The notes under the pieces were generated by a model, which saw nothing but the letters and a program-made list of their open reading frames with translations, was not told the origin of the DNA and ran no database searches. This document shows, in pieces, positions 33,076 to 58,232 of a stretch of 64,000 bases of DNA. The DNA is taken from positions 202,641-266,640 of the IMG/VR virus record IMGVR_UViG_3300005253_001115, one strand, 5' to 3'. Positions within the stretch are counted from its first letter, which is position 1; each line of letters opens with the position of its first letter. The translations under genes were made by a program, and so were the position numbers.

Positions 33076-33327
33076 CTACGAAGGGTTTGTGTATCTCTCC
33101 ACGAGGAGAGGCGCGGCATCAAGGATCGACATGATATCCTTCTTGCCAACCCCCGTTGCGTCGTGCAACAGTAGCACAATCGCTCGTCTTTTCAAGCCAG
33201 ATTCGTTGATCTGGTCGAAGCCGTCTGCCACTTTGTGGAGGCTGGAGACTATGATGCTGAGCGGCTCCTCAGTATCGTTATCGACCGTAACATGGGAGTT
33301 CTTGAGTTCTTTCTTAGGTCTGGGCAT
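33076..33327 (-). CDS. Hypothetical protein
   Basis: ORF tiles in the operon. Confidence 0.55.
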   Translation of the reverse strand: MPRPKKELKNSHVTVDNDTEEPLSIIVSSLHKVADGFDQINESGLKRRAIVLLLHDATGVGKKDIMSILDAAPLLVERYTNPS

Positions 33328-33589
33328 TCTTCCTCGCTTTCTGCGCCTCTATTGCTGCTCGTCTACCTGTAGATGCGGCGTTCTTGGGCGTGGCCTCTGC
33401 AAGATCGCTGGGCCAGTGTTTCGGGTTGTCCGTCCAGTCATTGCCATCTTGATGCAAGAAGACACCCCACATCTTACCTTCATGCTCTGTCTTAGCAAAA
33501 CAGTCCAGCCCTTGACTGTGCCCTTTGGGTCGGATACATCCCAGACCCAGACTGGGATAGCCCATGCTGCACAGTTCACCGCCCGGCAT
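33314..33589 (-). CDS. Hypothetical protein with C-terminal RRxAIxAQK motif
   Basis: Start reassigned to ATG 33589. Confidence 0.55.
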   Translation of the reverse strand: MPGGELCSMGYPSLGLGCIRPKGHSQGLDCFAKTEHEGKMWGVFLHQDGNDWTDNPKHWPSDLAEATPKNAASTGRRAAIEAQKARKNAQT

Positions 33590-33758
33590 TTTTCCTCGCT
33601 TTCTGCGCCGCGATTGCTGCTCGTCTGCCTGTCGGCTCGACCTTAGGTAGCTCGGTCTTCGCCTTGGGCATGGTACTGATAGCCTCAGCACACAGATTAA
33701 ACGCCCAGATGGCGTAGTCCCCAGGATACGATACGTCTTCATTCTTTTTATACGGCAT
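33576..33758 (-). CDS. Hypothetical protein with C-terminal RRxAIxAQK motif
   Basis: ORF tiles; shares a 3' DNA repeat with the downstream gene. Confidence 0.55.
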   Translation of the reverse strand: MPYKKNEDVSYPGDYAIWAFNLCAEAISTMPKAKTELPKVEPTGRRAAIAAQKARKNAGR

Positions 33759-34639
33759 TTTTCCACCACTCCTTGTCTATCTTCTCAAGCTCCGGCCCGA
33801 GTTTACTAGGAAAGACCACGGCGTAGCCCTCATCGTCGTTGATCTCGATGTGGTCGTGGTTGGTAGTGAGACGTGCAACTGCCTTGTAGAAAGCGCGCAA
33901 CTTATCTAGTTCGGCTGCTTCTTTCTCAGTCATTTGCGTCTCATCAATGTAACAGCGCTCTACGCTGCAACACCTGCGCCATGGCAGCCTTGAAGTTGGC
34001 TGCTGCGATCAGTATGTCCTGGGTGTTTCGGTCTTTCACCACCTGTACCAACTCATCGAGAGGCAGTGGCTCCAACGATTCTGCGAACGTAACGAACGCC
34101 CGAGACAGCGTGGGCAGATCTGCAAGTACATCGTTAACTGATAGATTCTTCATCAAAAAACTGCCTCAAGACCACTTTGGTACGGTCGGCAATGACCATA
34201 CCCATCGCTTCCACCACGGCTTCCACCGGACCGTTGTATGAGCCTACTAGCAAGTTTCCCGCCAACACCCGGGAAGGACCCTCGTCCCGTATGTGGACAG
34301 TGTATCCCTTGATCGTCAGGATTCCGGTTGAGGAGTCTGCCTTGACGTGGAAGTCGTGAGAGTCCTCAGGACCGCCCTCAAACAGCTCCACTGCCCTTTC
34401 GGCTGCCATCAGGGCCTTGCTGAAATTACTCATCTTGCTCTGGTCCATACTGAACTCCCATTCGCTCCTCGTAGGAGGGCGTCTTAGGGTAGAGATCTTT
34501 TACCCTTTGTTGGCGTTTTTCTTCCTCATCCCACGCAACCGCTCTATTTTTTGCGTCCTGCCACAAAAGAAAATGCACCCAGCCAAACACAGAGATGACG
34601 ATCCCTGCGGGAAGCCATGCAACTACAGTGACCCAGACC

Positions 34640-34960
34640 TCAGCGTTCATGACGCTTTCTCAGGCCGAACCAGAACTCTTGCATCTTGCCCAGCATGTAG
34701 TGGGTGATCTCCCCCACGCTGAGTTTGGCGATCACTGAATCGATGCCACAAAAGGGGCACAGTGCCGTGGCGTTACCGTGCATACCTGCATCCGGCATGC
34801 GAGATAAGAACGGGGTATCGTCAATCCACTCCTTGATAGGAAAATCCAGAGGGTCCCAGATGCGCTCGCAACAGAAACACCCCACCTGATTCGATGCCTC
34901 GATGGCGTGTCGATTCAGAGTGGACTTGCTGTGGATCTCGTGAAGCTGGCTTTCATTCAT
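34640..34960 (-). CDS. Cys-rich hypothetical protein
   Basis: GCFCC...TALCPFCGIDSVI, probably metal-binding. Confidence 0.65.
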   Translation of the reverse strand: MNESQLHEIHSKSTLNRHAIEASNQVGCFCCERIWDPLDFPIKEWIDDTPFLSRMPDAGMHGNATALCPFCGIDSVIAKLSVGEITHYMLGKMQEFWFGLRKRHER

Positions 34961-35317
34961 GAGTTACCTTTAGACAAGCTGAAAAAGTTTGGCTCCAATC
35001 CCGAATTTCTAAAAAGCTGGCGTATCTCTGTGGTAGTTCCGGGAACGATCAACCCGGGTACGATAGCAGCAGACGTGGAGAATGTACGGAGTTCTCTCCC
35101 GATGGCCACTGGCGCTGCGCCAATAGGCGATTCTGGTTTTGGGGCGTCTCCCTGAGGTCCAGATGAATTGTATCCAAAGACCAGAGACATCTGCGAGGAC
35201 TAGGGCAACCAGAGAACAACTGCTCCACTGTAACACATGATATCACCCCAATATTGATATGAAATAGAGTAGATAGCATGACTCTGATACACAAGCCACC
35301 CACCAACTTGAAGGAAT

Positions 35318-35845
35318 ATGATAGTGAAATCACTCAAAGAAATGATGGAATTAGGACATACTGTACAACTCGATGATGCCGAAGAGGAGATATATGCGGC
35401 ACTCGCTGGCTCTGGTCACCTTGATTCGCACATGTTGACACTTGCCGGACCGCTCGACGGGAAGCCTCGGCCACCTGAATGGTTTCGGGAGGAATTCCAC
35501 ACTATGTGTGCCGCTTACTTGCGCATGTACGACGAAAACCCTCAATGGCACATGGTGATAAATCGAGGCTGGTCCGGCACTGGTCAATGGAGTGCGCACG
35601 TAACTTGGGTGAACGAGAAGCCCCGGAAATTGAAATTCTTCACTTGGTGGTGGAATAAGCGTTTCGGCACGATGCGTTGTGTGCTATCTGTACACTCGAA
35701 TGGTCTCCGGTATATCGTAAAGAACATGGTGCAACCCGACGCCCGGACCTACGAAGGAGCACGAAATCGCCGAAATACCAAAAAAAGAGGTAAAGGTTTC
35801 CGTGGGGTTACCGATAAAGAGACCGATGCCGAAATCGAAGGATGA
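35318..35845 (+). CDS. Hypothetical protein
   Basis: 175-aa ORF with SD AAGGA. Confidence 0.55.
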   Translation: MIVKSLKEMMELGHTVQLDDAEEEIYAALAGSGHLDSHMLTLAGPLDGKPRPPEWFREEFHTMCAAYLRMYDENPQWHMVINRGWSGTGQWSAHVTWVNEKPRKLKFFTWWWNKRFGTMRCVLSVHSNGLRYIVKNMVQPDARTYEGARNRRNTKKRGKGFRGVTDKETDAEIEG

Positions 35846-36314
35846 CCCCAGAGAATTCAAGAACGAGAGCCTGCGAGACTGCTCAATGGACCGAGACGCC
35901 CAAGATATCCGCCGTCACGGGGAGCTTGAGAAGGCCAAGGACCGGGGCACCGCCAACATCGCCGAATACTTCTCTGGGATTCCGGCCGATCTGCTGACTG
36001 GGCTACCGGAGGTCATCAAGTCCCTTCCTGGGAAACTCGATGAGGACATGCTCGATATTTTGGCTGGTGCTCAACAAGCTCTGGAGATGCGGGACGCAGA
36101 AGACGACTAGGGCCTGTGCTGCCAACACTGGATAACGTCCTCGATATCCTCCCGCTGGCGTTTGCATCTCGAACCGGCCCGGGTATCTTCAACGCAGCGC
36201 ATCAAGTCTGCCTCAAGATACTCCATGATGTGCTTGAGACGAGTACGCAACTCGTTCGTGACGCGCTCGGAATCCCAGTCTAAATCGCTGTCGGCCATGC
36301 TGCCTCGCTCCCTA

Positions 36315-36656
36315 TTAGTGTATCCTACCTTTCATGGTCGCAGTTGAGACTGAAGTGGTGTCCTTCAGCGGATCTTGTCCTGCGGGAACGATGTAATCGA
36401 AACCCCGTATTTCTTGCTTTACTTTATTCAAGGTCGCTACCACACCATCCCAATACATCGAGAGATCCGGTGGCATGTCCCCGCCAGAGACCACTACGTG
36501 GTAGGCATTCGTCCTGATCTTCTGCTCAATCGCGAATCCAAGCTGGTGAGGGCCGGTGATAATGGAACCCATCTGGCCCAGCTTGTCATTCCAGTTGACG
36601 ATCTCGTAATCGAGGTATCCGATGCCTTTGCCGTTTAGCGTGAATCTGATACGCAT
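36315..36656 (-). CDS. Hypothetical protein coupled to the upstream metallopeptidase-like gene
   Basis: TAATG stop/start overlap. Confidence 0.55.
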   Translation of the reverse strand: MRIRFTLNGKGIGYLDYEIVNWNDKLGQMGSIITGPHQLGFAIEQKIRTNAYHVVVSGGDMPPDLSMYWDGVVATLNKVKQEIRGFDYIVPAGQDPLKDTTSVSTATMKGRIH

Positions 36657-38917
36657 TAGTAGCCCCTCAGCGTGGCGATGATAAGGGCCATGTGCTCAGG
36701 GTCGTCCCGAACCATAGCACCCCACATGTGCTCGTTGTAGAATGCCTGGACCCCCATAGAGACTAGCTCGCCATGCCCTTCCCGGTCACCGTAGCTCTTA
36801 CCACAGTAGACAGAGAAGAAGTGGTCAGGAATGAACTCCTCGTTTTTGTCATAGTGCCTCAGGTCAGGATACGGCTGCCCTGTTTTGGGGTCAATATCCC
36901 CGTTCCTGACGAGGGGCTGGCCTTCTGTCCGGTTCTTGTAGAAACCAGAGAAACGTCGAGCTGTATCGGGGTTGCTAAACTCCATGTGGTGCGCGAATTC
37001 GTGGATGGCGATATCGTCCCTGTCCGAAGCCGACCCCCCGCTGTACTTGCGTGTGGTGTCCCACATCTCATGCTTAGGTACCTTCTTGAGGTCCGCCCCT
37101 ACACTGAGGCAGATACGCCCGTCGGACGAGCTGGCGTAGGCTCGCACCATAACCTCCGATTCCCATGTTATGCCCACCATCCCCGGCCCACCCACCACAT
37201 CACGGTGGGCAATCGAGAACAGGTCTTGTAGGCTCTCTTGGATCTTAGCGGAATTCGGATAGCGTGAGCTTTCCTCCAGCGTCTCCTTGGATATCTGGTC
37301 TCGGTGCTTCTGTCTCAAGACCAACAGCTTCTTTCCTGTCAAGCCAGCGATGCCCTTGCCTTTCGCGACTGTGTAGTCCTCATCTTTTTCGTTAATCTCA
37401 GCCCACGCAGCATTCCCTACATTGTGCAGTATTTCACCAGCGCTTTCGGCATCAATTTGGGTGTATTGGTTGACTTTCCTCATTGCATTTTTGATGGGTT
37501 GGCGAATTTTCTCCGCCTCCTTCAGGATCTTTTCGCTCGCCCGTAGTACGCCCATGTGCGCGTTTCTTCCGAGTTGGTCGATGGCATCTTTGTCGTCTTC
37601 TAGGTCAGAGACCAGTTTAGCGAATTCACCCGTCTCCAGAGACTTGCTGTCTCTACGCTTTAGGATGTCAGCCTTTCTAGTTTGGTACTCCTTTTCGAAT
37701 TCCTCAGAAGCGTATTCTGCCTCTGCCAGGGCGGACCCTGCCAGCATGTAAGCTCTTTGTGCCGCGTCGATACCAGACCAATCAGCCCACTGCTTCATTT
37801 CCGTGGTCGCTTTCTCAGCAGCTTTGCGGTGATCGTGAAGATAGGAGTTCGGTGTCCATGATTCACTTAGACCGAAGCTCTCCCACAACATCCTGTTCGC
37901 CGACTCATCTCCAACTCTGGCCGAGCGGTCTAGTATTGCCATCGCCAGCTTCGTATTAGTCTCGAAGGGGGACCTTTCAACGGGGTCGATTTGTTGCCCC
38001 ATTCGCATTCGAAGCAAGTTCTGAAGAGTAACGGGTGCATCGGGATCATCCACGAACATCCTAGCTAAGTCGGCTCCTCCGAGTGTGGGCGACTCCCGCC
38101 AACTCGCCAGAAGCTCTTTCATTTTCGTTATCTTGCGGTAGGCGAGGTCCCGCCCAGAGTCCGGGATAGCGTCCATGTCAAAATTAGACAACTGTAGTAG
38201 ATCTTCTACCTCTAGAGTTTCCGGTCTATTTTGTACCTTGTCCCAGGTTTGAATGTCTCGCGGGTCGTCAGCCTTGATCGAGCTATTGAACTGATCCACA
38301 GCGAACTGGGCTTTGTCTACTTTCTTTTTGAAGTAGTTACCGCCTCTCTTGCTGGGCGGAATATCCTTATTGCTAATAAACTCCAGCGCCTCGTTTACAG
38401 CGGCTTGTAGCGCCTCGACGGCCTTCAGGTTCTCGGCCCTGTCGTCGCTTTGGAGAGCCTGGGCAGCCTCTTTCAGCTTGATGGCTTTGGTGTTGCCCTT
38501 CGGGGTTCTAACCAGTACAGCCTGAAGGGACTCAAGAGCTTGAGCCACCATGTCCTTCTGGCGTGCCCACTGTCCTTCCGGCACCAACTCAATAGCCTCC
38601 GCAGAGGGGCCAGGCTCCTCAGGAGCGGGCTCGCTGGGCTTGTTGTCATCCCAGTCCACATCCCGCTCGTTACGCTCGTCAGCGGAGTTCTCGTCGGTCC
38701 AGTAAGGGTTCTCTCCTGGCTCTGGTCGGTGAGCTTCTCCGTCGTGGCAGTCCTTGTCTTTTGAGATCCACCCGTCACCACAAGGGATATCGTCGGGACT
38801 GTTAGGTACTTTGTCGCCCGCGTAAGCAGGGTCCTCGTCTTCCGTAATGAAGCTGTCCCAATTCAAAAAATCACGCATCGGTAGCCACCTAAAGGGGTTT
38901 ACACTAGAAATAACCAT
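36656..38917 (-). CDS. Large protein with C-terminal HExxH zincin-like domain
   Basis: IHEFAHHME...YCGKSY...ELVSMG...DPEH; N-terminal CGDGWISKDKDC. Confidence 0.65.
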   Translation of the reverse strand: MVISSVNPFRWLPMRDFLNWDSFITEDEDPAYAGDKVPNSPDDIPCGDGWISKDKDCHDGEAHRPEPGENPYWTDENSADERNERDVDWDDNKPSEPAPEEPGPSAEAIELVPEGQWARQKDMVAQALESLQAVLVRTPKGNTKAIKLKEAAQALQSDDRAENLKAVEALQAAVNEALEFISNKDIPPSKRGGNYFKKKVDKAQFAVDQFNSSIKADDPRDIQTWDKVQNRPETLEVEDLLQLSNFDMDAIPDSGRDLAYRKITKMKELLASWRESPTLGGADLARMFVDDPDAPVTLQNLLRMRMGQQIDPVERSPFETNTKLAMAILDRSARVGDESANRMLWESFGLSESWTPNSYLHDHRKAAEKATTEMKQWADWSGIDAAQRAYMLAGSALAEAEYASEEFEKEYQTRKADILKRRDSKSLETGEFAKLVSDLEDDKDAIDQLGRNAHMGVLRASEKILKEAEKIRQPIKNAMRKVNQYTQIDAESAGEILHNVGNAAWAEINEKDEDYTVAKGKGIAGLTGKKLLVLRQKHRDQISKETLEESSRYPNSAKIQESLQDLFSIAHRDVVGGPGMVGITWESEVMVRAYASSSDGRICLSVGADLKKVPKHEMWDTTRKYSGGSASDRDDIAIHEFAHHMEFSNPDTARRFSGFYKNRTEGQPLVRNGDIDPKTGQPYPDLRHYDKNEEFIPDHFFSVYCGKSYGDREGHGELVSMGVQAFYNEHMWGAMVRDDPEHMALIIATLRGY

Positions 38918-38938
38918 CTAATGAGGGCATCGGATTCC

Positions 38939-39475
38939 CTAGTTGCCCCTTTCTTTCATCTTTTTGGCCCACTTCTTCTGCCACTCGGACTGCGGAGTGT
39001 CGTTCAGAATATCCTCGACCGAAGCCGTAGCCCTGTGTGGCCCAGAGGCTCTTGTTTGCGATCTACGGGCTTTTCTCCTTCTAGGCGATGGCGGAGTGGC
39101 CTTAGCGAAGAGGTGGTCCCTCTGCTCGTCATAGTAACCGTCAGGGCCAGATTTGTAATACTTCAGGGTTGGATCGTTGGTTCCCCAGTTCGGCGGGGGC
39201 GGCTTCCTTCTGGCTTCCTTCCGCTTCTTCTCCCTATGGTGGTAAGAGGTCCCCGTGGGGGGTTTTGACCTTATCACCGGCTCTCGGTACGGACACTTCC
39301 CTGCCTTGGTGGGGTTGGTGATTGCTCGGTAGGCCCAATTGACCAATTGGAACTCCATATCTGGTAGATCCGGGTTCAGGTCAGGATGGGTTTCCCTGGA
39401 GAGCTTCCGGTAAGCGTTCTTGATCCGCTTCCTAGTGGAACCTCTTTCAATTTCGAGCACCTTGTACGGGTCCAT
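38939..39475 (-). CDS. DnaJ (J-domain) protein
   Basis: DPYKVL...IKNAYRKL...HPDLN. Confidence 0.85.
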   Translation of the reverse strand: MDPYKVLEIERGSTRKRIKNAYRKLSRETHPDLNPDLPDMEFQLVNWAYRAITNPTKAGKCPYREPVIRSKPPTGTSYHHREKKRKEARRKPPPPNWGTNDPTLKYYKSGPDGYYDEQRDHLFAKATPPSPRRRKARRSQTRASGPHRATASVEDILNDTPQSEWQKKWAKKMKERGN

Positions 39476-39633: not shown

Positions 39634-40038
39634 TCATTTTCTCTCCTCTGCCGCGAAATGCTGCTGAACATCCGACAGAAGCTCGTCCAGCTTCCCCTCA
39701 AGGATGTCCTTGTAGCGATAGGTCTTCCCGGAACGGTGGTCCTTCACACGCTGATCGGACTCGTGATAAGTCCTTACACGTTCTGTACTTGTAGCCTCTA
39801 CTTGCGTTTTAGCGGCCTCTTTCATCAGAGGCACGAGGATATTCGTCATGCGCTTGAAGGCAGCCTTCTTGTTCTTTCCCTGCTCCTTATGCTCCTCGGC
39901 TTTAGCTGTAATCCCAGTTTCTACATGTGTTAATCGAACAGCCGTATCCCTTTTATTTCGATTTTGACCACCTTTGCCGCTAGCGCGGTAGTAGTCGATT
40001 CTGATGTCTTCTTTACGAACTGTCTGTGGCCACGCCAT
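39634..40038 (-). CDS. GGQ peptidyl-tRNA hydrolase domain protein (truncated class I release factor-like)
   Basis: RASGKGGQNRNKRDTAVRLTH...RTYH...RVKDHR; start reassigned to 40038. Confidence 0.88.
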   Translation of the reverse strand: MAWPQTVRKEDIRIDYYRASGKGGQNRNKRDTAVRLTHVETGITAKAEEHKEQGKNKKAAFKRMTNILVPLMKEAAKTQVEATSTERVRTYHESDQRVKDHRSGKTYRYKDILEGKLDELLSDVQQHFAAEERK

Positions 40039-40096
40039 TTTGTTTCTCACATGCTTATGTTTAGGAGGGAGTATTACTAAAGAAAGGATCATCTTT

Positions 40097-40900
40097 ATGT
40101 TACTATCATTGCCTTTTGAAGAGATAATTGCACGGTACCAGAAAGGAGAATCCCAAGCACAACTTGCTAATAGCTTTAGTGTAGACCGGCGAACTATTAG
40201 GAGAAGGCTGGTTAAAGCTGATATACCTCTTAGGTCTGGTGGAGAGGCTTCCAAGGTCCAAAAAAACAAAGCCTTTACTGCATCCACTGTGGTAAACGAA
40301 TTGGTCGATGGAATGTTATTAGGTGATGCTTGGATAGAGCAAGGACAAGACAACGCTCGCCTTGGTATTGAAGTGACCAAAAAATCCGAAGGGTGGATAG
40401 AACAGATATCTGATATCCTCACAGCGCACGAGGTCAAGCATTCCATAGGGTATAGAAAACCCAGAGAAAAAATAATAAACGGCATTCATACCCGATCAAA
40501 GGAAAGCGTTATGCTTAGGACCAGTCTATATCCTAATTTTGCTGTCCAAAGACTACGGTGGTATCCAGAAGGTACAAAAATAGTGCCCAGAGATTTAGAA
40601 CTTACTGCAAGTAGTATAGCTCATTGGTATTGGGGTGACGGATCAACCAGCAAGTATATGGTCCGTCTATACACGAACAATTTCTTAGAAAAAGACTGTG
40701 AATTCCTAGTAAGCTGTCTGTTGGAGTTCGGAGTAAGTTTTTCAATAAGCAAAAGTCGCAAAAATCCTGTTCTTAGTCTGTACAACAATTCTGAAAGAGA
40801 AAGGTTTCTGGACCTAGTTCGGGACCACGTTCCAGAATGTTTCGAATACAAAGTACAAAAACCTGTAATAGTGAGAAGAAGCAAGCCTACTCTTTTTTGA
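40097..40900 (+). CDS. LAGLIDADG homing endonuclease with N-terminal HTH
   Basis: GMLLGDAWI and IAHWYWGDGS; SD AAAGGA before ATG 40097. Confidence 0.8.
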   Translation: MLLSLPFEEIIARYQKGESQAQLANSFSVDRRTIRRRLVKADIPLRSGGEASKVQKNKAFTASTVVNELVDGMLLGDAWIEQGQDNARLGIEVTKKSEGWIEQISDILTAHEVKHSIGYRKPREKIINGIHTRSKESVMLRTSLYPNFAVQRLRWYPEGTKIVPRDLELTASSIAHWYWGDGSTSKYMVRLYTNNFLEKDCEFLVSCLLEFGVSFSISKSRKNPVLSLYNNSERERFLDLVRDHVPECFEYKVQKPVIVRRSKPTLF

Positions 40901-40906
40901 AAATTC

Positions 40907-41340
40907 CTGCGCCGTAGACACCATAGTACCGGATTACACTGTCATGTTGGTCTACGGCGCAGAACGAGGCACGGCATTCTCCTTTTGGATTACACTGCTA
41001 TGTAGGACGTTCCTCTTTGAAAATTCCTGCGCCGCAGACATCATAATGTCGGGTTACATCACCGAGTCGGTCTGCGGCGCAAGTTAAAATGTAGTAGACA
41101 CGGCAAGACCACTCGGGCTACAACTTCAACACGGCCGTGTCTACTGTGTTAGAAAAGGAGGCGCGACATTCTCCTTTTGGGTTACACTGCTATGTGGGCC
41201 GTGCCTCTTTGAAAATTCCTGCGCTGCATGGCACGGCTCTGGGGGGTTACAACATCGCTAAGGCCACACAGCGCAGGTTAAAATGTAGTAGACACGGCAT
41301 ATCCCAAACGGGTTACAACATTCTGCTGGCCGTGTCTACT
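40907..41340 (-). repeat. TIGR-like stem-loop guide array, block 1 (7 units)
   Basis: Units at 40907-40962, 40966-41015, 41028-41081, 41093-41145, 41158-41207, 41218-41277 and 41287-41340. Each is a 9-14 bp stem enclosing CCN-N9-TGTAA(C/T)CCN-N9-TG. Confidence 0.88.
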
Positions 41341-41349: not shown

Positions 41350-42174
41350 TCAATCCGATACCTTCCGCCACTGCTTCCACAGTTCCCGCAGGATGCGCTT
41401 CGACAGGAGCCTACGCTGGTGTAGGAAGATGTGGCCCGTTGTCCAGTCAGGGTGTGCAGCAGCAGCTTTGGCCTTCACTCCCTCAGAATATTGGTAGAAT
41501 TCATTGTTGGTCTTCTTGCCGTTCTGGTGAACAGTACCCTGCACAACGAACATCATGGATCTCCTGCTCGGGTTGTAACCGTGCAGTTTAGCCATTTCAG
41601 TGCCACGTCGAAGGCGCTGGCGAACCATGGGATCTTGCGCATTCTCGGACACCATACCTAGCCCAAAACGCTTCCACAATTTAGCGGGCGTGGCGAAATT
41701 ACGCAAGTCGGCTCCGGCTTCTGCCAATATCCTTCCTACAGCTAGGAGGCTCAGGCCGGGGGTTCCTTTACCGGGGCGACCAACCCACGAAGCGATCGGC
41801 ATACCTGCCACTATGGCAGTGATGTCTTTGTGGTATTGCCTTATTTGGGGGTCGAAGCCCCTGATAGCAGGGACCATAGCGAGCGCCATAATCTCCACTT
41901 TCGCAGCAAATACCTCTATTGGGTCGGTGGAGGTCCGATCAATCTCGTCAGGCTTCACATGCAACATCCACTTTTTGTGGACGGCAGTTGCCAGCGCTCC
42001 GTCTTTTGTGCAGAGAGCGTACTTCTTAACGAAGCACGTCTTACCTTTGCAGTGGTGGTCCTGCACAGCACGCTTGATGACGCCATGTAACTGCTGGTTG
42101 AGGGACTCTCTTGCTCTCTCAAGATTCAGACAATCTCTATGGAGGCCGAGGAGTTTAGTGATTTCGTTGTGCAT
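41350..42174 (-). CDS. Nop-domain / IS110 C-terminal-like RNA-binding protein without nuclease domain (TasA-like)
   Basis: Helical N-terminus, then PGLSLLAVGRILAEAG.DLRNFATPAKLWKRFGL...GYNP...H...RR...KRILRELW; no RuvC/DEDD or HNH domain; flanked on both sides by dual-spacer arrays. Confidence 0.82.
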   Translation of the reverse strand: MHNEITKLLGLHRDCLNLERARESLNQQLHGVIKRAVQDHHCKGKTCFVKKYALCTKDGALATAVHKKWMLHVKPDEIDRTSTDPIEVFAAKVEIMALAMVPAIRGFDPQIRQYHKDITAIVAGMPIASWVGRPGKGTPGLSLLAVGRILAEAGADLRNFATPAKLWKRFGLGMVSENAQDPMVRQRLRRGTEMAKLHGYNPSRRSMMFVVQGTVHQNGKKTNNEFYQYSEGVKAKAAAAHPDWTTGHIFLHQRRLLSKRILRELWKQWRKVSD

Positions 42175-44414: not shown

Positions 44415-44603
44415 TTAGGTGACAGGTGTAGTTTCCTCTTCGGCAGCCAGCCTCATAGCTTTAGCCTTTTTTTGAGCTTCTATGGCTTGCCTTCGACCGG
44501 ACTTTTTTAGCTCTGCTGGATAAGCATGGCCATAACAGATGATACGGTTGGGAATTGCCTCTGCCTTGCACCCCTTGACTTCGCAGGTTTTCCAAATTGC
44601 CAT
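44415..44603 (-). CDS. Small Cys/His protein with RRQAIEAQK motif
   Basis: CEVKGC...CYGH; SD GGAG. Confidence 0.55.
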   Translation of the reverse strand: MAIWKTCEVKGCKAEAIPNRIICYGHAYPAELKKSGRRQAIEAQKKAKAMRLAAEEETTPVT

Positions 44604-44790
44604 GTCGCTTCTCCAGCGGGTAGATGCCTATTCCATGTCTCCTTCAACTTCAACCAGCTTTCGGTCTGTGTACTTGCCTCGAACTTTATTTACCTTGTCG
44701 GTCGCTTCGGCGATTTCTCTAGCCTCTTCGTCAGACAGGTCGTGATCCAGCACGAGCCTCTTCGCGGAGAACACAATTCTTTCGAATAGG

Positions 44791-45027
44791 TCAAGGACTT
44801 TCATTTTTACGCTCCTTCTGAGCCATTATCGCCTGACGGCGACTGCTCATCCGTGGTTCCTCCTTAGCCTCCTTGAGAGCGTGCCCGCGATACGCAAGGT
44901 CACCGATCCATCCACTCGGGTTGTCTATATAGTGATACTCCCCGCGCAGGGGCTTACTGTCGTCGGCGACGTACACTGCACCTAACTTGCGCAGTAACAG
45001 GTTGCTGTCCTCTAGTTTAGCAGCCAT
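44791..45027 (-). CDS. Hypothetical protein with C-terminal RRQAIMAQK motif
   Basis: Start reassigned to ATG 45027. Confidence 0.5.
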   Translation of the reverse strand: MAAKLEDSNLLLRKLGAVYVADDSKPLRGEYHYIDNPSGWIGDLAYRGHALKEAKEEPRMSSRRQAIMAQKERKNESP

Positions 45028-45608
45028 GCCAAACCCACACAGAGGGCACCCAAAGCCGCCCCTGCCGAGAAACCGACGAGGAGCGCTGCCCGCAATGCCT
45101 TCTGCATCCGCCCTACAACCTGAGCAGCGTGCTGCACCTTGGCAACCGTGACGCAATGCTGGGCAGGCTCCCAATCGAGAACCATCTGGTTGATGCACTC
45201 GATCGGAACACCGTGGGTGTTTCGCTGAGCGGCAACAATAGTCGCAGGGTGGGGGAGTTCCACAATAACTACGCGGTAACCCTCAGCCTCAGCAGCCTTT
45301 ATGTACGGGTGGTACTGTTCGGTCTTGACGTTCGTGTTGTCCACAATCACGCAAGGCTTCCCAGCGGCGCACGAGTCCTTGAAGTTCTGGAGGTTCTGGG
45401 CGTGCCGCTCCCCAGCCAGAGCCACATCGAACTTGTACTCGCCATCGACCATGCACAGATCGTCGGTCGAGTGGATCGCTGCGTCAGTCAACCGCCGACT
45501 GCCGTCCCTGCTCGTCTTACCGGGGAAACAGCCCCGGGCGATCATTTTGGCAACAGTGGATTTCCCAGAGCCCGGAATACCTCTCATTATGAATGCGAAT
45601 TTTTTCAT
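45012..45608 (-). CDS. N4BP2-like P-loop (polynucleotide) kinase with C-terminal hydrophobic anchor
   Basis: MRGIPGSGKST, VIVDNTN, RNTHGVP; promoter motif 10 nt upstream of ATG 45608. Confidence 0.75.
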   Translation of the reverse strand: MKKFAFIMRGIPGSGKSTVAKMIARGCFPGKTSRDGSRRLTDAAIHSTDDLCMVDGEYKFDVALAGERHAQNLQNFKDSCAAGKPCVIVDNTNVKTEQYHPYIKAAEAEGYRVVIVELPHPATIVAAQRNTHGVPIECINQMVLDWEPAQHCVTVAKVQHAAQVVGRMQKALRAALLVGFSAGAALGALCVGLAWLLN

Positions 45609-45618
45609 ACTTTCCTCA

Positions 45619-45643
45619 TCGGTCACCTAGCGCAGAACATTAG
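45619..45643 (-). promoter_or_regulatory. Sigma28-like promoter (CTAATG-N15-CCGA-N10-ATG)
   Basis: Repeated motif. Confidence 0.55.
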
Positions 45644-45914: not shown

Positions 45915-46898
45915 TTAGATCGTTTCTCTGAAAAGCGAGGAGATGCTCTCTTCGTTGTTGGTGCGGCGAATTGCCTCACCCATTAGAGGTGCGATGCTTA
46001 CTACCTGCACCTTGTTGTAACCGTCGTTCTCGGCGTTACGCGGGATTGGGTCTCGGGCAATCAAAGCCACTGTATCGGTGGTGAGCAGCTTCGTGAGCCC
46101 CTTCGTGTTGCCCATAGTCTTGTAGGCGTTCCCCGAGAGAACCGGGTGTGTGATGGCCGCAATGGCGCTCGTTGCGCCCTGCTCCATCAGGGCATCGACG
46201 CCCTTGCACAAGGTACCGGCAGTGTCGATCATATCGTCAACAATCACGCAGACTTGACCCTCCACATCGCCTACGATATTCATGACTTCGTTCTCGTTGG
46301 AGCGAGCACGCCGCTTGTCGATGATGGCGATCGGTGCCTCAAGCCTCTTGGCGTAAGCCCGTGCCCTCTCTGTACCACCAGCATCCGGCGATATGATAGT
46401 GAAGGGGGTGAGTCCCACTTCCTTGCGGACAGATTCCAATAGAACAGGCTTGGCGTACAGGTTGTCTACCGGGCAATCGAAGAACGCCTGGATCTGCCCG
46501 GCATGCAGGTCCATGCACATTACACGGTCTGCGCCAGCCCTGTCGATCAGGGACGCTACCAGCTTGGAAGTGATGGGCATTCGAGCAGCGTTCTGCTGGT
46601 CCTGGCGAGAGTACCCGAAGTACGGGATGACTGCTGTGATGCGACCAGCAGAGGACCGACGCAAGGCGTCGATCATAATGAGCAGTTCCATCAGGTTCCG
46701 GTTGGTGTGGGGCGGGCAAGTCGGTTGGACGATGAAACAATCAGCGCCTCTTACGTTCTCCCCGATTGCTACCTTGATCTCACCGTCGCTGAAACGATCT
46801 ACCTCGGCCTTGCCTAGAGGGCGGTCCAGATAATCAGCCACGTCGTGGGCTAGCTGGGGGTTGGCGTTTCCAGTGAATACCCGGATATCACCCTTCAT
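45915..46898 (-). CDS. prs: Ribose-phosphate pyrophosphokinase
   Basis: FSDGE, LMELLIMIDAL, PYFGYSRQD, DLHAGQIQ, SPDAGG, IVDDMIDTAGT. Confidence 0.93.
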   Translation of the reverse strand: MKGDIRVFTGNANPQLAHDVADYLDRPLGKAEVDRFSDGEIKVAIGENVRGADCFIVQPTCPPHTNRNLMELLIMIDALRRSSAGRITAVIPYFGYSRQDQQNAARMPITSKLVASLIDRAGADRVMCMDLHAGQIQAFFDCPVDNLYAKPVLLESVRKEVGLTPFTIISPDAGGTERARAYAKRLEAPIAIIDKRRARSNENEVMNIVGDVEGQVCVIVDDMIDTAGTLCKGVDALMEQGATSAIAAITHPVLSGNAYKTMGNTKGLTKLLTTDTVALIARDPIPRNAENDGYNKVQVVSIAPLMGEAIRRTNNEESISSLFRETI

Positions 46899-47924
46899 TC
46901 CTCGCTCCTTCATTTGTTGTACCATATGACGTGGGTGAATTCACCCCGGTTTTTTCCTTGCTTGAAGTCCGATGGGAGGAACTCGATACTGGTTTTGTGG
47001 GTGGCGGTTGCATAGTACGCAATACCGTCACTATCGATGATGGCCCCGCTCTCCAGTATAGAGGAAAACTCCTCTTTAGTAAAGTGATCCCCAAAGTCAG
47101 GCAGAGGGCTGAGGGTGAAGTTGTCGTCACTCATTCGTCAATCTCCATTTTCGTGATGGTGTAATAGATGCCTAGGGGACTACCTTCACAATAGATCTCG
47201 CACCACAACTCAGTTTCCCCCTCGTCTCGGGGCTCGTGGACACAGAATGTGTACCCCGGTTCGCTCCAGCTTTCTTTGGAGTCAGCTACCGCTGCTAAAA
47301 CTGCCCTGAAGAAGTCAGAGTAGACTCCCGTGTAGCTGGCATCGTTGCAGTCCTCAAAGAACTGTCTTACGACATAGACTTCGGGCATACTTCATCCTCT
47401 TCGTGGTCGCAGTCCGAGTGCTCACATTCGTACTCGTGGTCCACGTCGTAGTCGGTGTCGATGTGGGTATCGCAGTTGTGGCAGTAGATTACACTCATCC
47501 TTTATCCTTTCGCTGGAGGTAGGCGTGCTCGTCGAATGGTACATCACTCAGCACCCTATCGTCAATGGCAACAATCGTTCCAGTCTTCATGTCAATGTGG
47601 AATTTCACCTCGTAGAGTGCGCCCACGAGACGCCTCCACAGCACCTCAAAGCGGGGATCATCGTCGTCGATGTTGAAACCGTACAGCTTGTCCGCTGCGC
47701 TCTCTTTGGAGCCGTGCAGGCAGGTTGTAATGATGAGCGGGAATTCTTCCATGTTGTCTTCGATTTGCTCATCAATTGCCGCCTTGGCTTCCTCTTTGGA
47801 GGCGGCATAACCCCAACGGTTGTCGCCTGCCCCGTCGAAGTCCTCGTGAGCAAAACCCCAGTCCATGGCGCGGCACGGTATAGGCTTCGCCCAATAGTAG
47901 ATCCGGTAGCCCCTGTATTCGGTT

Positions 47925-53694: not shown

Positions 53695-54153
53695 CTAGAA
53701 ACTATCGTCGTAGTCGTACCCAGGTTCGCTTCGAGTCCGGTCGTCTGCTTGACGCTGCTCGACTGCTTCAAAAAGAATCTCCTCAATGGAGGCTTGCTCG
53801 TTGCCCAGGAGGATCTCGTCGCCGAGAGACTTGAACCGGAACATCGCGTTGTCGCTGAAGGACTCCCAGTTTTTGCCAAAAAGGGTTCCCCGAAAGAAAT
53901 CCTTTATTTTGCGGGAGAAGGAACGAAAGTCGCCGTCGAGTATAATGGTAATGTCCTCAACACATGAGAAATCCATGCGACACCCTCGGTTCCCGTCTGC
54001 GTCGGCTCCGTAGTTGTGGTCAATGTCGATATTGACGAAACCCTCAACTTCAAGCTCGAAATAGTCAAGCTCGCCTTTGTAGGCGTCCATATCAACAATT
54101 TCGCCCGTCCAACCCCCGGGACGCTCAAACTCGTAGTGTGCGGTTGCTTGCAT
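53695..54153 (-). CDS. Hypothetical protein
   Basis: Promoter motif 10 nt upstream. Confidence 0.6.
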   Translation of the reverse strand: MQATAHYEFERPGGWTGEIVDMDAYKGELDYFELEVEGFVNIDIDHNYGADADGNRGCRMDFSCVEDITIILDGDFRSFSRKIKDFFRGTLFGKNWESFSDNAMFRFKSLGDEILLGNEQASIEEILFEAVEQRQADDRTRSEPGYDYDDSF

Positions 54154-54163
54154 GTATTACTCT

Positions 54164-54188
54164 TCGGCTCCTGTGACGGATTCTTTAG
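54164..54188 (-). promoter_or_regulatory. Sigma28-like promoter (CTAAAG-N15-CCGA-N10-ATG)
   Basis: Repeated motif. Confidence 0.7.
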
Positions 54189-54268
54189 CAGAAAGAGAAA
54201 TAATGAGCGAAGCCCCCGGAGAGCGCCAGAACACTCAACCAGGGGCTTGCTTAATGCCGCCTAAGCGG

Positions 54269-54691
54269 CTATTTCGAGAACTGTGCGCGCCAATACTTGT
54301 TCATCAAGCCACGGCGCACACGGCTGTTACAGTGCTCATCAGAGTGAGTCTCATGGAGGTTCAGGTCGGCCCCATGAACCTCACGCATGAACGAACCTAC
54401 CGCAACTGACCGGCTTACGCCAGCGCTACAGTGGATCATGAAGTCACTCTCGATGTAGCTCTCGATGAACTCATGCAGGATCTCAGCATGTTCGATCGAG
54501 AACGCAATGATGTTGTGCCCTGTCATGCCTGTGGGGATCTTCACAACGTCATCGAACTCGATGCGCAGAATGTCGTCCCAACCCTCTTTCAACTCGTAGC
54601 TTTCCCCGGGGCTACCGATGGAAATCACCACTGTCCTGGGACGTGGCTCGATCTCGGCCGCATGGTACTTGCTGTAAACGTCCACCCTCAT
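54269..54691 (-). CDS. Cys-dependent (PTP/dual-specificity-like) phosphatase
   Basis: IHCSAGVSRS (CX5R). Confidence 0.85.
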   Translation of the reverse strand: MRVDVYSKYHAAEIEPRPRTVVISIGSPGESYELKEGWDDILRIEFDDVVKIPTGMTGHNIIAFSIEHAEILHEFIESYIESDFMIHCSAGVSRSVAVGSFMREVHGADLNLHETHSDEHCNSRVRRGLMNKYWRAQFSK

Positions 54692-55143
54692 TGTACTTCC
54701 TTCGACAAAGCCTCTGTAATCATTTCCCGGAGCTTGTCCATTACGGATGGAGTATTAGCGGTAGAGTGGACCAGTTCAGCACGTCCTCCGTTCTCTTCGA
54801 TCACCTTGCAGAACGACTCACACGCAGACTCAAGTTTACCTGCCGTTTCGATGAATCCGTGCGGAGCCTCCTCGACCAGTTCCTTGGAATCCTTGAGGCC
54901 CAGCCCCGTGAAAGCGCGCACTTCCTTGATGCACTGAATCTTCCTCTCACCGAAGGATATGAAGGTGATGCCTGCCGGTCGCCCCTCAGTCAGTGCCGGT
55001 AGCTTCGCGCGCAGAAAGTCGTTCACGTCAAGCTCGACGCTAAGACGATCGGCCCTCAGTACCTCGGGGCCGATGGTACATTCCAGTCCCTCGACTTCCA
55101 GCTTGAGGATGTTGTCTTTGAAGCTCAATTTCGATGCAGGCAT
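54688..55143 (-). CDS. Protein containing a ribosomal protein bL12 C-terminal domain
   Basis: KIQCIKEVRAFTGLGLKDSKELVEEAP. Confidence 0.8.
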   Translation of the reverse strand: MPASKLSFKDNILKLEVEGLECTIGPEVLRADRLSVELDVNDFLRAKLPALTEGRPAGITFISFGERKIQCIKEVRAFTGLGLKDSKELVEEAPHGFIETAGKLESACESFCKVIEENGGRAELVHSTANTPSVMDKLREMITEALSKEVQ

Positions 55144-55153
55144 GGTTTACTCT

Positions 55154-55178
55154 TCGGCCTCCCGACCGAAAACTTTAG
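55154..55178 (-). promoter_or_regulatory. Sigma28-like promoter (CTAAAG-N15-CCGA-N10-ATG)
   Basis: Repeated motif. Confidence 0.7.
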
Positions 55179-55298
55179 GCATCCATCGGAAAAGCACCAC
55201 ATGTCGGGCAGTGGCGGGGCCGAGCCTTGCGCGCCTTCAAAACCAGCTTAACTGCGATCACGAGCAACTCGTCAGCCAAATCATACCGAGCGAACATC

Positions 55299-55805
55299 TT
55301 AACGTGCCCTCTCATGTGCCAGAAGCGCCTTTGTAACCTTCGCCATGGCCGGAATGTACCGCTCCAGAGCTAATCGAATGTGATGCTCCGTCCGTCCCGG
55401 CTTCGGTGCAGCGTTCCGCTGAATGTCGGCCAGTTTGACGACGGTGGTGTCCCGATCGAGAATCGCCCGATCGAGAAACTCGTTGTAGGTTTCTTTGCCG
55501 AAGTAGTGCCGGGTCAACCCCGTCAGAATCTCATGGACCCGAACGAGGTCATGCTTCTCAAGGAACAGGGAGATCCGGCTCTCACTCTGTGGGTGGTCCT
55601 CCATCGCGTCGTGGAGAATCGCGGCAACCTGAACTTCGATCGACTCGTCCTGCTCCTGTACCGTCTTGAGAACCTGAAGTAGGTGGAAGATGTAGGGACC
55701 ACCACCGTAAAGGTCATCCTTGTGGATGTCGGCGGCGAGTGCGATTGCCTTTCCTAGTACCTTGTCCGTCGTAAAGCGCTTTACTAAAGCTAGTACCTTC
55801 GTCAT
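55299..55805 (-). CDS. HD-domain hydrolase, SpoT/Mesh1 (small alarmone hydrolase)-like
   Basis: A..H...PYIFH, AAILHDAMED, LT, VKLAD. Confidence 0.8.
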   Translation of the reverse strand: MTKVLALVKRFTTDKVLGKAIALAADIHKDDLYGGGPYIFHLLQVLKTVQEQDESIEVQVAAILHDAMEDHPQSESRISLFLEKHDLVRVHEILTGLTRHYFGKETYNEFLDRAILDRDTTVVKLADIQRNAAPKPGRTEHHIRLALERYIPAMAKVTKALLAHERAR

Positions 55806-55829
55806 GGTGTGTTCCCTTCACCCTATCTA

Positions 55830-55854
55830 TCGGTCCTCACCCGTGGAACTTGAG
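55830..55854 (-). promoter_or_regulatory. Sigma28-like promoter (CTCAAG-N15-CCGATA)
   Basis: Repeated motif. Confidence 0.65.
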
Positions 55855-56090
55855 GCTTTTCCCTATGGAAGCGAATGCTGCCTTTGTTTCACACTGGTTG
55901 CTACAAAAATCTCGTGTGGTTTCATGGCCGCAGAAGTTGCACTTCCCCTGCTTGCTCTTGTACTCCTGTTCGACGTAACGCTCAGCGTTCACGCGGTCGT
56001 CCATACGGCGCTGGATTTCCAGCGGGGCAGGAACAAGTTTGGCTATCATCCAGTTAACCTCTTCTTTATCTAGTCCCATGTTCTCTACCT

Positions 56091-56116
56091 TCGGTCCGAG
56101 CCTTGATTGCCTTGAG
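56091..56116 (-). promoter_or_regulatory. Sigma28-like promoter (CTCAAG-N16-CCGA-N11-ATG)
   Basis: Repeated motif, inside the upstream CDS. Confidence 0.5.
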
Positions 56117-57009
56117 GTTTTTCTCGTACCCTGGCGAATTGTAGTCGTTCGCCGAAAAGCCTACTACAAAATTGCTGAACTCCTGCTCTAGCAGTTCCCA
56201 CACGCTGCGGTAGGTGGTGTGGAAAGTTGGCTCCCAGTCTCGGTAGTCAGCGCTCTGGCGTCTCTGGGGCTCCCAGTCTCGGTAAACCGGGTCGTTGACA
56301 AACTGAACCTGATTTGTGGCCTGCTCATGACGCTCGGTCATTTCGCGAGGATCGTCCAGTACGTGCCCACCCGGAGTACAAAACCCGTAACATCCCATGG
56401 CATTGGAAAACCGCAGGTTGTGCGCATCGCAGAATGGTTGCAGTACATTCTTCTCGAAATACTGCACATGGCTATCGAAAGCCTTCTCCATGCGATCAGC
56501 GATTCTCTCGCTGTGCTTCTGCACCTTCCCAATGCCCTCTTCTAGACTCACGGGGTGACTTTCGGGAGCTTCCACTCCATGCGGTCGCCGTAGGCGTTCT
56601 TGATGAGCGTCTGCTCGCTGATAGCCGCCGCCAAAGCCTTGCGGGCATTCCGGGCAGTGGCACCGAACCCACACGCACCTCGCAGCATGGCACCTTCCTT
56701 CACCTCGCACCTACGCAGGCTGGCGACCTTCTGGTTCGTTGCAGTCTCGGTGACTTTTACCTTGCTGTCGGTCATGTACTCGACTTCTTTCAATCTCATG
56801 CGTATGCCTTTCCTATTTAGCGGTTCCGATGTACCAGCCGGGCCAGCTTTGACCGTGACTGCTCGATCTCTTCGTCACTCATTGGAGTCTGGACGAACCG
56901 GCGTTCGGTCTCATTGAACCCAGGGAAATCGCCGTGCTCTTCGAGACCTTTGTGGAAGGGATCGGTCGCGATGTTGTCCTTGACTTTTTCGTCTTCCATA
57001 CTTTATTCT

Positions 57010-57034
57010 TCGGTCGTTTCTCCAGAAACTTGAG
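57010..57034 (-). promoter_or_regulatory. Sigma28-like promoter (CTCAAG-N15-CCGA-N10-ATG)
   Basis: Repeated motif. Confidence 0.7.
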
Positions 57035-57363
57035 GGAAAAATGGCCGCTCCGGGCCGGTCCCTGTCAACATGCCACCCGGTCAACCCTACAACCAAAGGG
57101 TGGGTGCGTCGGAAATGCAGCCCGGAGCGACGACTACTGTGGCTTTAGGATAGCCTCGCCGTGGGTCGCGAACGCTTCGGCCTGCTTCTGGAACCAGAAG
57201 TCCTCTTCCATCTCGTGGACCTCGGCTTTGAGGTCGTCCATGTAGGCTTGCGTCATCGGCACGAGATTACCGGACTCGTTTCGGACCATCACTCCGAACT
57301 CGCCGAAGTCCTCACGCTGGAGGGGTCGAAAGGCGTCTTGAATCATGCTGAGTAGTCTGCGCA

Positions 57364-57801
57364 TCACCAGACCTCTACGAGAGCATCGGAGGGCATCTTC
57401 GGCACTGCGATCCGAGCGTCTTCGGCAAGGTCATCTGCCACGGCGCTCGACTCGATCATGTTGAGAATGATGTCCCTGACCGAAAGCTCGAACACGCGAG
57501 ATACTGCGTCCCCGAGAATGTCGTAGTCACCACGATGCACCTCGTCGGTACTCTCGGGATCATCGAACGTAGCATGGAAGGGCACGACCGTGAACACCTG
57601 CCACTTCGGACCGCGAACCTCGCGCCCGCCCATACCAAAGCGCAGCGTGCCGTCTGTTTCGATCAGCAGGTTGATGCCCAGACCGGGCAGGTTGACCAGA
57701 AACTCGGTGTCGGACTTCTGCTCGACCTCGATGGTGCTCGTCATGCCCAGCGTCTTGATGCCTGCTTCGAGGAACTTGATTGTCTGCTTTACGCTTTCCA
57801 T
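57364..57801 (-). CDS. Hypothetical protein
   Basis: Promoter motif and SD upstream. Confidence 0.6.
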   Translation of the reverse strand: MESVKQTIKFLEAGIKTLGMTSTIEVEQKSDTEFLVNLPGLGINLLIETDGTLRFGMGGREVRGPKWQVFTVVPFHATFDDPESTDEVHRGDYDILGDAVSRVFELSVRDIILNMIESSAVADDLAEDARIAVPKMPSDALVEVW

Positions 57802-57827
57802 TTTGCTTGCTCCCTTTCCTTTATGTA

Positions 57828-57852
57828 TCGGACACTTGGTCAGGATCTTGAG
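57828..57852 (-). promoter_or_regulatory. Sigma28-like promoter (CTCAAG-N15-CCGATA)
   Basis: Repeated motif. Confidence 0.65.
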
Positions 57853-58232
57853 GCTTTCTTAGCCTTTTGTGCCCGGATCGCTCCCCGTCTATTCGTCATT
57901 TCTCGGCCCGTGCCGTCGGTCTGCACCCCACCGGTTCGCTCATGCTTCGGGACGTAGTTGTCTACGAGTTTCTGCAACTCGTCATGGAAGTGGTCGCCAC
58001 GCCACGCTATATCGGCGTTCCCTTCACGGAGATCTTGCACACGAAGGACCGCCACGCACGCCTCGACAGTGGAGAACTCGTCACTGTCATCTGCGGGGTT
58101 ATCGGGCTCCCGGGGAAAGAATGTAGCAACGAAGCGGAAACCGGCAATTGTAGTGATTTCGGCATCGTCGTGCCCCACGAACAAAATCGTCCAGAATCCA
58201 CGCCCGCTTACTCCGTTTCGGTGGTAACTCAT
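57840..58232 (-). CDS. Hypothetical protein with C-terminal RRGAIRAQK motif (start uncertain)
   Basis: YHRNGVSG...WRGDHF; the track start overlaps the GGDEF gene. Confidence 0.55.
   Translation of the reverse strand: MSYHRNGVSGRGFWTILFVGHDDAEITTIAGFRFVATFFPREPDNPADDSDEFSTVEACVAVLRVQDLREGNADIAWRGDHFHDELQKLVDNYVPKHERTGGVQTDGTGREMTNRRGAIRAQKAKKASRS

Follow-up and report, generated by a model that had tools for sequence, protein, structure and literature searches.

What could lead several unrelated small proteins of a single phage to end in the same short peptide? The question arises from the last 64 kb (bases 202,641–266,640; hereafter the window, 64,000 nucleotides in all) of a 266,640-bp IMG/VR record of an uncultured jumbo phage (IMGVR_UViG_3300005253_001115). 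An earlier note, made from the letters alone, had described five small window proteins ending in the motif RRxAIxAQKx(R/K) and had proposed a portable C-terminal tag for capsid packaging, localization, or docking to a common host target. We followed this up across the full record and in public sequence collections. Of those three purposes, docking to a common host or phage partner is the best reading and capsid packaging the least likely. At roughly even odds (about 0.5), we read the peptide as a portable C-terminal docking signal by which accessory proteins of many kinds would be tied to a single cytoplasmic partner, conserved and negatively charged. Below, the conserved peptide is called the tail and the remainder of each protein the body; positions are those of the window unless marked as genome positions.

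All five peptides were found where they had been described, and all are encoded on the minus strand. Gene D (33314–33589; 91 amino acids in the gene caller's product) has an uncharacterized body and a tail ending ..TGRRAAIEAQKARKNAQT, whose core (33329–33370) reads T-G-R-R-A-A-I-E-A-Q-K-A-R-K. Gene E (33576–33758; 60 amino acids) likewise has an uncharacterized body; its tail ends ..TGRRAAIAAQKARKNAGR, with the core at 33591–33632. The 62-residue product of gene F (44415–44603; core at 44460–44501) has a small Cys/His body resembling a zinc knuckle, gene G (44791–45027; 78 amino acids; core at 44806–44847) closes with ..SSRRQAIMAQKERKNESP, and gene H (57840–58304; core at 57855–57896) closes with ..TNRRGAIRAQKAKKASRS. 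Two details of the original description required adjustment. Proteins D, E, G, and H do end in the motif, whereas protein F continues for 14 residues beyond its copy (SGRRQAIEAQKKAK). For gene H, the end at 57840 stands, but translation probably begins at the GTG at 58304 (154 amino acids) instead of the ATG at 58232 (130 amino acids), because homologues conserve the N-terminal extension (MAEIESKLA..). Orthologues of D (P0017) and E (P0002–P0005) retain the tail, and that of F (P0028) retains both the tail and the extension.

The motif is more frequent than these five genes indicated. A six-frame motif-profile search of the genome (genetic code 11 throughout; approximately 375 open reading frames, ORFs, called) returned 11 strong copies, five of them in the window. 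Of the remaining six, five are encoded on the plus strand by genes ending at genome positions 11606, 21108, 24590, 30643, and 195181, and one on the minus strand at genome 161187–161549. Every copy is located at the C-terminal end of its ORF and on the locally coding strand. Six-frame translation of the 266,640 bp likewise contains the pattern RR.[AL]I..Q[KR] 11 times, each time within the last 13–26 residues of the ORF, while 0.15 occurrences are predicted from composition and 30 codon-block shuffles averaged 0.2 and never exceeded 1. Chance is thereby excluded as the source of the motif. The tail genes are placed in arrays of small genes near both record ends, at 161 kb, and at 195 kb, and none falls within the stretch annotated for terminase, portal, and tail fibre (genome ~47–77 kb). 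Two weaker copies lie in the middle of proteins encoded at genome 18580–18996 (+; MTDRKGLVAAQKALRQ..) and 190346–190687 (+; GEGRKAAIRAQKLNN..) and look like decayed tails. In a relative, the counterpart of the first copy is a true C-terminal tail, which suggests that the 18580–18996 ORF arose by gene fusion through loss of a stop codon.

What is conserved is the peptide and not its DNA. A logo of 50 distinct tails gave the consensus x-T-[GDN]-R-R-[AGQ]-A-I-x-[AD]-Q-K-[AE]-R-[KN], numbered from the first Arg. Positions R1, I5, and Q8 are invariant; at least 90% of tails have R2, A4, K9, and R11, 80% have A10, and 72% have T-2 (R1 and I5 occur in all 50 tails, A4 in 49, and R2 in 48). In 45 of 58 cases, the first Arg lies 13–17 residues from the C-terminus. 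At the conserved residues the codons vary synonymously, with Arg encoded by CGC, CGA, CGT, AGA, or AGG, Ile by ATT, ATC, or ATA, and Gln by CAG or CAA. When the 11 tail DNAs of the genome were aligned, conserved columns appeared solely at codon positions 1 and 2, and RNAalifold found zero conserved base pairs in the same alignment. Across homologue pairs, the 14-residue core is 89% identical compared with 65% for the bodies; in families whose bodies have diverged to 36–50% identity, the core is still 86–100% identical. The ORFs are thus maintained by purifying selection as proteins, and these comparisons of sequence show strong selection on the tail peptide itself.

The bodies that precede this peptide have little in common. 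All-against-all BLASTP of the N-terminal parts combined with profile comparison supports the description of the proteins as unrelated, within the detection limits of these methods. The sole BLASTP match was a weak one between D and G (E 0.013), for which profile comparison gave no support (P 0.13). Searches of the 11 tail proteins against Pfam, PHROGs, and NCBIfam left ten bodies without a family; the other, from the gene at genome 20671–21108, corresponds to two uncharacterized PHROGs, and a Foldseek search of a model of its family against the Protein Data Bank (PDB) gave nothing at E ≤0.001. At least 325 proteins make up the family of this body; they are typically about 122 residues long (mostly 120–125) and occur in many phages and some bacteria. 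All sampled members below approximately 60% identity are without the tail, and tails, in differing flavours, are confined to close relatives of this phage.

Relatives of the phage show the same exchange of bodies around a constant tail. A 184-kb relative (terminase 91% identical, DNA 70–78%) keeps two of the tail genes and has two other tails on new bodies, while in another relative one orthologue has lost its tail through an early stop. The 26 homologues of H retain the tail almost throughout. The body of G is preceded in two relatives (P0032 and P0033) by additional Cys-rich N-terminal domains. A search of 1.84 billion representative proteins with the tail profile gave 34 matches at E ≤0.001, of which 33 are small proteins (59–198 amino acids) with a C-terminal tail on varied bodies, including a membrane-anchored Cys-rich family, several zinc ribbons, and one protein with two tandem tails. 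The 34th match, a 760-residue repeat protein, is unrelated and was set aside. On one 2.2-kb metagenome contig, four tail genes follow one another, and nothing else on this contig is common with the phage. The proposal of a portable C-terminal tag is therefore well supported by the many bodies, by the addition of the tail to an otherwise tail-less family, by the swaps and losses of bodies, and by the higher conservation of tail than body.

One route by which such exchange may proceed is visible at genes D and E. The 48-bp DNA repeat that the earlier note had seen there was confirmed at 33323–33370 (tail-coding DNA of D) and 33585–33632 (tail-coding DNA of E) with 92% identity, and its two copies bracket the body of D. 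Gene D is absent from relatives L013 and L022 and from the contig of P0004. In two relatives the E orthologue is directly followed by the gene that here follows D; the third (L022) carries a different body with an E-like linker and tail. A DNA alignment shows the single tail of L013 to be chimeric, with the 5′ flank of the E tail joined to the 3′ flank of the D tail. Because relatives without D carry a single chimeric tail, as in this alignment, gene D is best described as a "body plus tail" cassette that comes and goes through recombination between its flanking direct repeats, which are tail DNA. Integron cassette arrays and the boundary sequences of lambdoid phages resemble this arrangement in that a repeated element at the 3′ end mediates gain or loss of whole genes. 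Sites of the integron type, however, are noncoding, structured, and accompanied by an integrase, whereas the tail repeat is coding and conserved as a peptide; no integrase association and no conserved structure were seen for the tail repeats.

The predicted structure and charge of the tail are consistent with a peptide that binds a partner. In the AlphaFold2 model of H, a helix spans residues 115–129 after a low-confidence linker, and in the 20671 family the tail prolongs the last helix of the body with predicted local distance difference test (pLDDT) scores of 60–67. Inspection of the linkers showed them to be rich in Pro, Glu, and Thr, and the T-[G/D/N] step ahead of the paired Arg residues resembles a helix cap. 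Drawn as a helical wheel, the tail has its conserved Arg, Lys, Gln, and Ile on one face and A4, A7, and A10 on the adjoining face. As only positions 3, 6, and 13 are free to vary, the pattern suggests that the helix would be largely enclosed by its putative partner. The net charge of the tails is approximately +3 to +8, while the bodies are mostly acidic (median isoelectric point 5.2). Members of the membrane-anchored family (genome 194828–195181, P0009, P0014, P0021, P0027, and P0037) have an N-terminal hydrophobic segment directly followed by basic residues; by the positive-inside rule, the body and tail of these proteins should be cytoplasmic.

We therefore consider a model with several conditional steps. 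The tail would form a short basic amphipathic helix of ~12–14 residues, capped by T-[G/D/N] and joined to its body by a flexible linker rich in Pro, Glu, and Thr. Within a clade of uncultured jumbo phages, it has become attached to small, unrelated accessory bodies of several kinds (acidic globular, zinc-ribbon or Cys-rich, and membrane-anchored). It would then recruit all of them to a single conserved, negatively charged partner in the host cytoplasm, with each body supplying a different activity. Our leading guess for this partner is a nucleic-acid-containing machine (the ribosome or other RNA, or DNA), with a conserved acidic protein hub as second choice. Spread of the system would occur by recombination between tail-coding DNAs, adding, deleting, or swapping "body plus tail" cassettes in frame. 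A bolder version, which we offer only tentatively and would ourselves bet against, is that the peptide acts as a zip code directing a large and fast-changing repertoire of small effectors to one host machine. Equally tentative candidates for that machine are the ribosome, at an rRNA site of the S21 or ArfB type, and an AAA+ protease, which each body would modify or redirect differently.

Shared docking and targeting peptides are already known as a kind; what appears new here is the sequence, the number per genome, and the cassette behaviour. Partners of sliding clamps bind through C-terminal tails in T4 gp43, gp33, and gp55, the C-terminal tip of SSB gathers its own set of partners, and UNG2, XPA, and SMARCAL1 share a motif that binds RPA32C. 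Like the tail, these hub-docking motifs are short, often terminal, tethered by flexible linkers, and found on unrelated folds, and the RPA32C-binding motif is also a basic amphipathic helix, as is predicted for the tail. The tail sequence is nevertheless unlike any of the hub-docking motifs compared. Clamp motifs are hydrophobic or acidic (QL[SD]LF, or LDFLF in T4), whereas the tail logo has a single hydrophobic residue, Ile5. Poxvirus ankyrin proteins with a PRANC domain provide another precedent, in that many paralog-poor, fast-turnover genes, located in variable parts of the genome, have differing N-terminal portions but a common C-terminal docking module. Poxvirus PRANC and F-box proteins dock to the SCF complex. 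PRANC is a folded domain of ~50 residues with Skp1 as its partner, in contrast to the 14-residue peptide on unrelated bodies found here.

The clade's richness in translation genes gives mild support for a ribosome or RNA partner; in this genome they include a GGQ-only RF-1 domain protein and a CCA-adding enzyme. The tail also resembles the basic amphipathic helices of lambda N, P22 N, HK022 Nun, ArfB, and SmpB in length and in its face of Arg, Lys, and Gln. In ArfB and SmpB, the C-terminal tail lies in the ribosome's empty mRNA channel, and E. coli ArfB reads RR-L-A-SK-AQK where the phage tail reads RR-x-A-Ix-AQK. Residues reported as critical in ArfB, however, do not coincide with the conserved tail positions, and the ArfB and SmpB tails are carried on GGQ and SmpB bodies, which the tail proteins here do not have. 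Arginine-rich motifs are N-terminal with at least five Arg, whereas the tail is C-terminal with two Arg and usually one more. A lead to ribosomal protein bS21 was dropped: one double-tail gene on a distant contig adjoins a gene for phage S21, but S21 is absent from this genome, and the S21 C-terminus is not alike. No repeated RNA hairpin was identified as a partner for the tail, and the window gave no Rfam or tRNA matches.

Several observations weigh against the docking interpretation. The searches made for a binding partner did not identify one. With the tail profile, PDB sequences gave chance matches only (E >0.3; ArfB, SmpB, and ribosomal proteins were all missing up to E 10), E. coli K-12 gave nothing, and co-folding protein E with the SSB-like protein of the phage yielded no answer, which is evidence neither way. 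The likeness to the ArfB tail falls short of significance (hhalign P 0.073, probability 0.8%, for the alignment RRxAxxAQK). Only DNA runs were found to contain the sequence, and no RNA run with this region. Most tails lie within 13–17 residues of the C-terminus, which docking motifs need not do; a degron or a role of the nascent chain would account for this placement no less well. The bias can also be explained by spread through recombination at 3′ ends.

Among the competing explanations, a degradation or adaptor tag is unlikely, although likelier than the others. The tail would be read by an AAA+ system (host ClpXP, ClpAP, Lon, or FtsH, possibly a phage ClpP-family protease), either for the timed destruction of early proteins or to dock adaptors that deliver host targets. 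Its strict placement near the C-terminus behind a flexible linker, on soluble as well as membrane-anchored bodies, is as expected for such a tag. The high turnover of small bodies with a constant tail also resembles adaptor and F-box repertoires, and a ClpP-family gene is present at genome 109110–109649 (+), in a 236-residue ORF. That gene could instead be the prohead protease, and the only clear AAA match in the phage is the clamp loader, with no phage unfoldase found. The C-terminal ClpX signal of MuA, RRKKAI, can be likened to RRxAI. This type of degron (ClpX C-motif-2) sits at the extreme C-terminus, as known ClpX and ClpA C-degrons are read at the very end, whereas RRxAI is followed by 8–12 or more residues, of which the last 3–6 are not conserved. 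Some tails (F, the 20671 family, and P0020) are followed by 8–40 further residues.

A signal for packaging into the virion, by which cargo would be brought to the procapsid, portal, or DNA and delivered with the genome, appears improbable. One signal on many fast-turnover small proteins does have the look of an effector repertoire with a delivery signal, and basic peptides could travel on DNA or scaffold. The capsid-targeting sequence of T4 internal proteins and the cargo peptides of encapsulins are comparable, too, as portable terminal peptides that give their cargo a shared destination. Known capsid-targeting sequences such as that of T4, however, are N-terminal and removed by the prohead protease, whereas the tail is C-terminal in all cases and no T4-type cleavage site is conserved (position 6 is variable, and A-I-E occurs in just 8 of 50 tails). 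Encapsulin peptides are rich in Gly, Leu, and Ile and encoded near the gene for an HK97-fold shell; the tail consists of Arg, Lys, Gln, and Ala and is not encoded beside a shell gene. The N-terminal membrane anchor of one tail family is hard to reconcile with capsid cargo, and the absence of tail genes from the terminase, portal, and tail-fibre stretch points in the same direction.

The relation of the tails to the genes downstream raises a different possibility, which we regard as very unlikely: that the nascent tail acts in cis from within the ribosomal exit tunnel, slowing or holding the ribosome near the stop codon and tuning termination–reinitiation on an overlapping downstream gene. In six or seven of the 11 tail genes, the Shine–Dalgarno sequence and ATG of the next gene are contained in the final codons of the tail (K-[A/E]-R-[K/N]-N-[A/G]). 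In G, the codons AAG GAG .. AAT G double as the AAGGAG Shine–Dalgarno sequence and ATG of the gene at 44628–44804. The ATG of D lies within the last codons of E (14-nucleotide overlap), and the gene after D (33076–33327, minus strand; 83 amino acids, MPRPKK..; no tail of its own) has an SD-like GAGGAAG and its ATG within the last codons of the D tail, again overlapping by 14 nucleotides. Only three 14-nucleotide overlaps occur in the genome, all at tail genes. Selection on the peptide instead of the RNA, together with the position of the motif 9–13 residues before the stop in most genes, would also suit such a role. Overlapping starts, however, are common across the whole genome, at 128 of 375 genes compared with 6 of 11 tail genes, and the four tail genes without an overlapping downstream gene (H, F, and those labelled 20671 and 24228) keep the motif; the 20671 tail is followed by a tRNA-like sequence. 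The distance to the stop ranges over 9–22 codons or more, while known arrest peptides depend on a fixed register and on conserved residues at the peptidyl-transferase centre. Given the frequency of overlaps across the genome and the motif's persistence in these four genes, dual coding shapes no more than the final few residues and does not account for the tail. Scans for sigma-70 promoters and terminators around the tail genes found sites no more numerous than in shuffles.

The core R-R-x-A-I could also be directed at an enzyme, either as a pseudosubstrate that blocks a basophilic Ser/Thr kinase or an Arg-directed enzyme (e.g., in host defence) or as a modification site, but we give this little credence. 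The tail does conform to the pseudosubstrate core R-R-x-A-hydrophobic of protein kinase A (PKA), with Arg at P-3 and P-2, Ala at P0 in 49 of 50 tails, and Ile at P+1 in 50 of 50, although this is a pattern match only. PKI (GRRNAI) and RI-alpha (RRGAI) are pseudosubstrates of PKA, and we know of no RRxS-type preference among bacterial Ser/Thr kinases. Nothing in kinase pseudosubstrates corresponds to the equally conserved A-Q-K-A-R-K half, the models show the segment as a helix and not as an extended strand, and no Hanks-type kinase (Pkinase domain) was found in the phage. Finally, that the tail is a functionless by-product, kept mainly as a recombination linker and translation-initiation cassette, would suit the precise absence, in relatives, of D, which is bracketed here by its repeats, the exchange of tail flavours within one body family, and the start signals encoded in tail ends, but it is largely refuted by the synonymous-site pattern: beyond the D/E pair the tail DNAs are too dissimilar for homologous recombination and differ mostly synonymously, and only selection on the peptide explains nine nearly invariant positions across bodies 36–50% identical.

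The phage record has 53% G+C and an estimated completeness of 89%, and marine-sediment metagenomes yield contigs identical or nearly identical to it; one of the source projects is cited in Lokiarchaeota papers. Its terminase is 31–35% identical to those of the cultured jumbo phages PaBG (Pseudomonas), NCTB, Dickeya AD1, and Erwinia Alexandra-like phages. The AAGGAG-type Shine–Dalgarno sequences, together with a GGDEF gene, suggest that the host is a bacterium. With the tail profile, none of the cultured distant relatives PaBG, NCTB, Dickeya AD1, and Vibrio GR7B gave a match, while the positive control, a search of the phage's own genome, recovered 11 of 11 copies. A DNA-pattern scan of IMG/VR for RRxAIxAQKxRK gave a single chance match, out of frame. 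The same kind of scan of 185,579 prokaryote genomes gave 58, all out of frame or otherwise due to chance (≤21 bits, compared with 35–52 bits for true tails); the best-looking of these, antisense to an acetyltransferase gene, was rejected. An ESM Atlas feature search with the tail was not informative (scores ≤0.82, clusters without names), and literature searches by peptide string and on C-terminal motifs shared in phages turned up nothing of relevance.

The surroundings of the tail genes contain further features. Directly upstream of G, and overlapping its start by 16 nucleotides, is a gene for an AAA_33/zeta-toxin-like P-loop kinase (45012–45626, −), and a PRPP (phosphoribosyl pyrophosphate) synthetase is encoded at 45915–46925 (−). 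Directly upstream of H, with slight overlap, lies the gene for a stand-alone GGDEF diguanylate cyclase domain (58276–58830, −; 184 amino acids). Among translation-related genes, the window protein at 39634–40038 (−; 134 amino acids) consists of the GGQ/RF-1 peptidyl-tRNA-hydrolase region only, without codon-reading domains, an ArfB-type tail, or the C-terminal tag. The adjoining gene (38939–39475, −) encodes a 178-residue J-domain (DnaJ) protein whose C-terminal half is very basic. Small-gene arrays of relatives contain genes for an IF1-like protein, a methionine aminopeptidase, and an RtcB RNA ligase in L051 (a 66-kb contig), and in relative L044 the bS21 gene directly follows that for a protein with two tandem tails.

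Elsewhere in the window, a replication and transcription block (11720–15541, −) encodes a RecA-like protein (11720–13084), the SSB-like protein (13156–14259), whose long acidic C-terminus ends ..DDDDEFDFDDDDFE, and a sigma-70-family factor of 400 amino acids (14339–15541). A 234-nucleotide (78-codon) unit is repeated about nine times with 61–78% identity over three consecutive genes at 24088–27178 (−), which encode 288, 291, and 452 amino acids, the last with a faint match to the haem-NO-binding (HNOB) domain. In the intergenic region at 40890–41340, clustered repeats of ~70–75 nucleotides are spaced by 120–195 nucleotides, and each holds a long GC-rich inverted repeat (TGCGCCG.AGAC ... GTCT.CGGCGCA). 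They match neither Rfam families nor tRNAs and are flanked by a LAGLIDADG homing-endonuclease gene (40004–40900, +) and a transposase-like gene (41350–42174, −). A perfect 12-nucleotide tandem repeat (TCTGCCTGGGCC, ~4.5 copies) lies within a minus-strand gene at 10880–10939.

One short peptide, extremely conserved, is carried by approximately 3% of the genes of a jumbo phage and by dozens of protein families in uncultured phages related to it. Small orphan genes are abundant in phage genomes, and the shared tail provides an experimental handle on them: a common partner could give many of them a shared context. The gene D cassette shows a simple in-frame route by which phage accessory genes can be shuffled. 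Were the partner to be a conserved machine of the host, engineering would gain in the tail a targeting tag ready for use. Should the zip-code proposal prove true, the tail proteins would be a bacterial-virus counterpart of effector families of the RxLR and PRANC type, with cassettes exchanged via tail-coding DNA.

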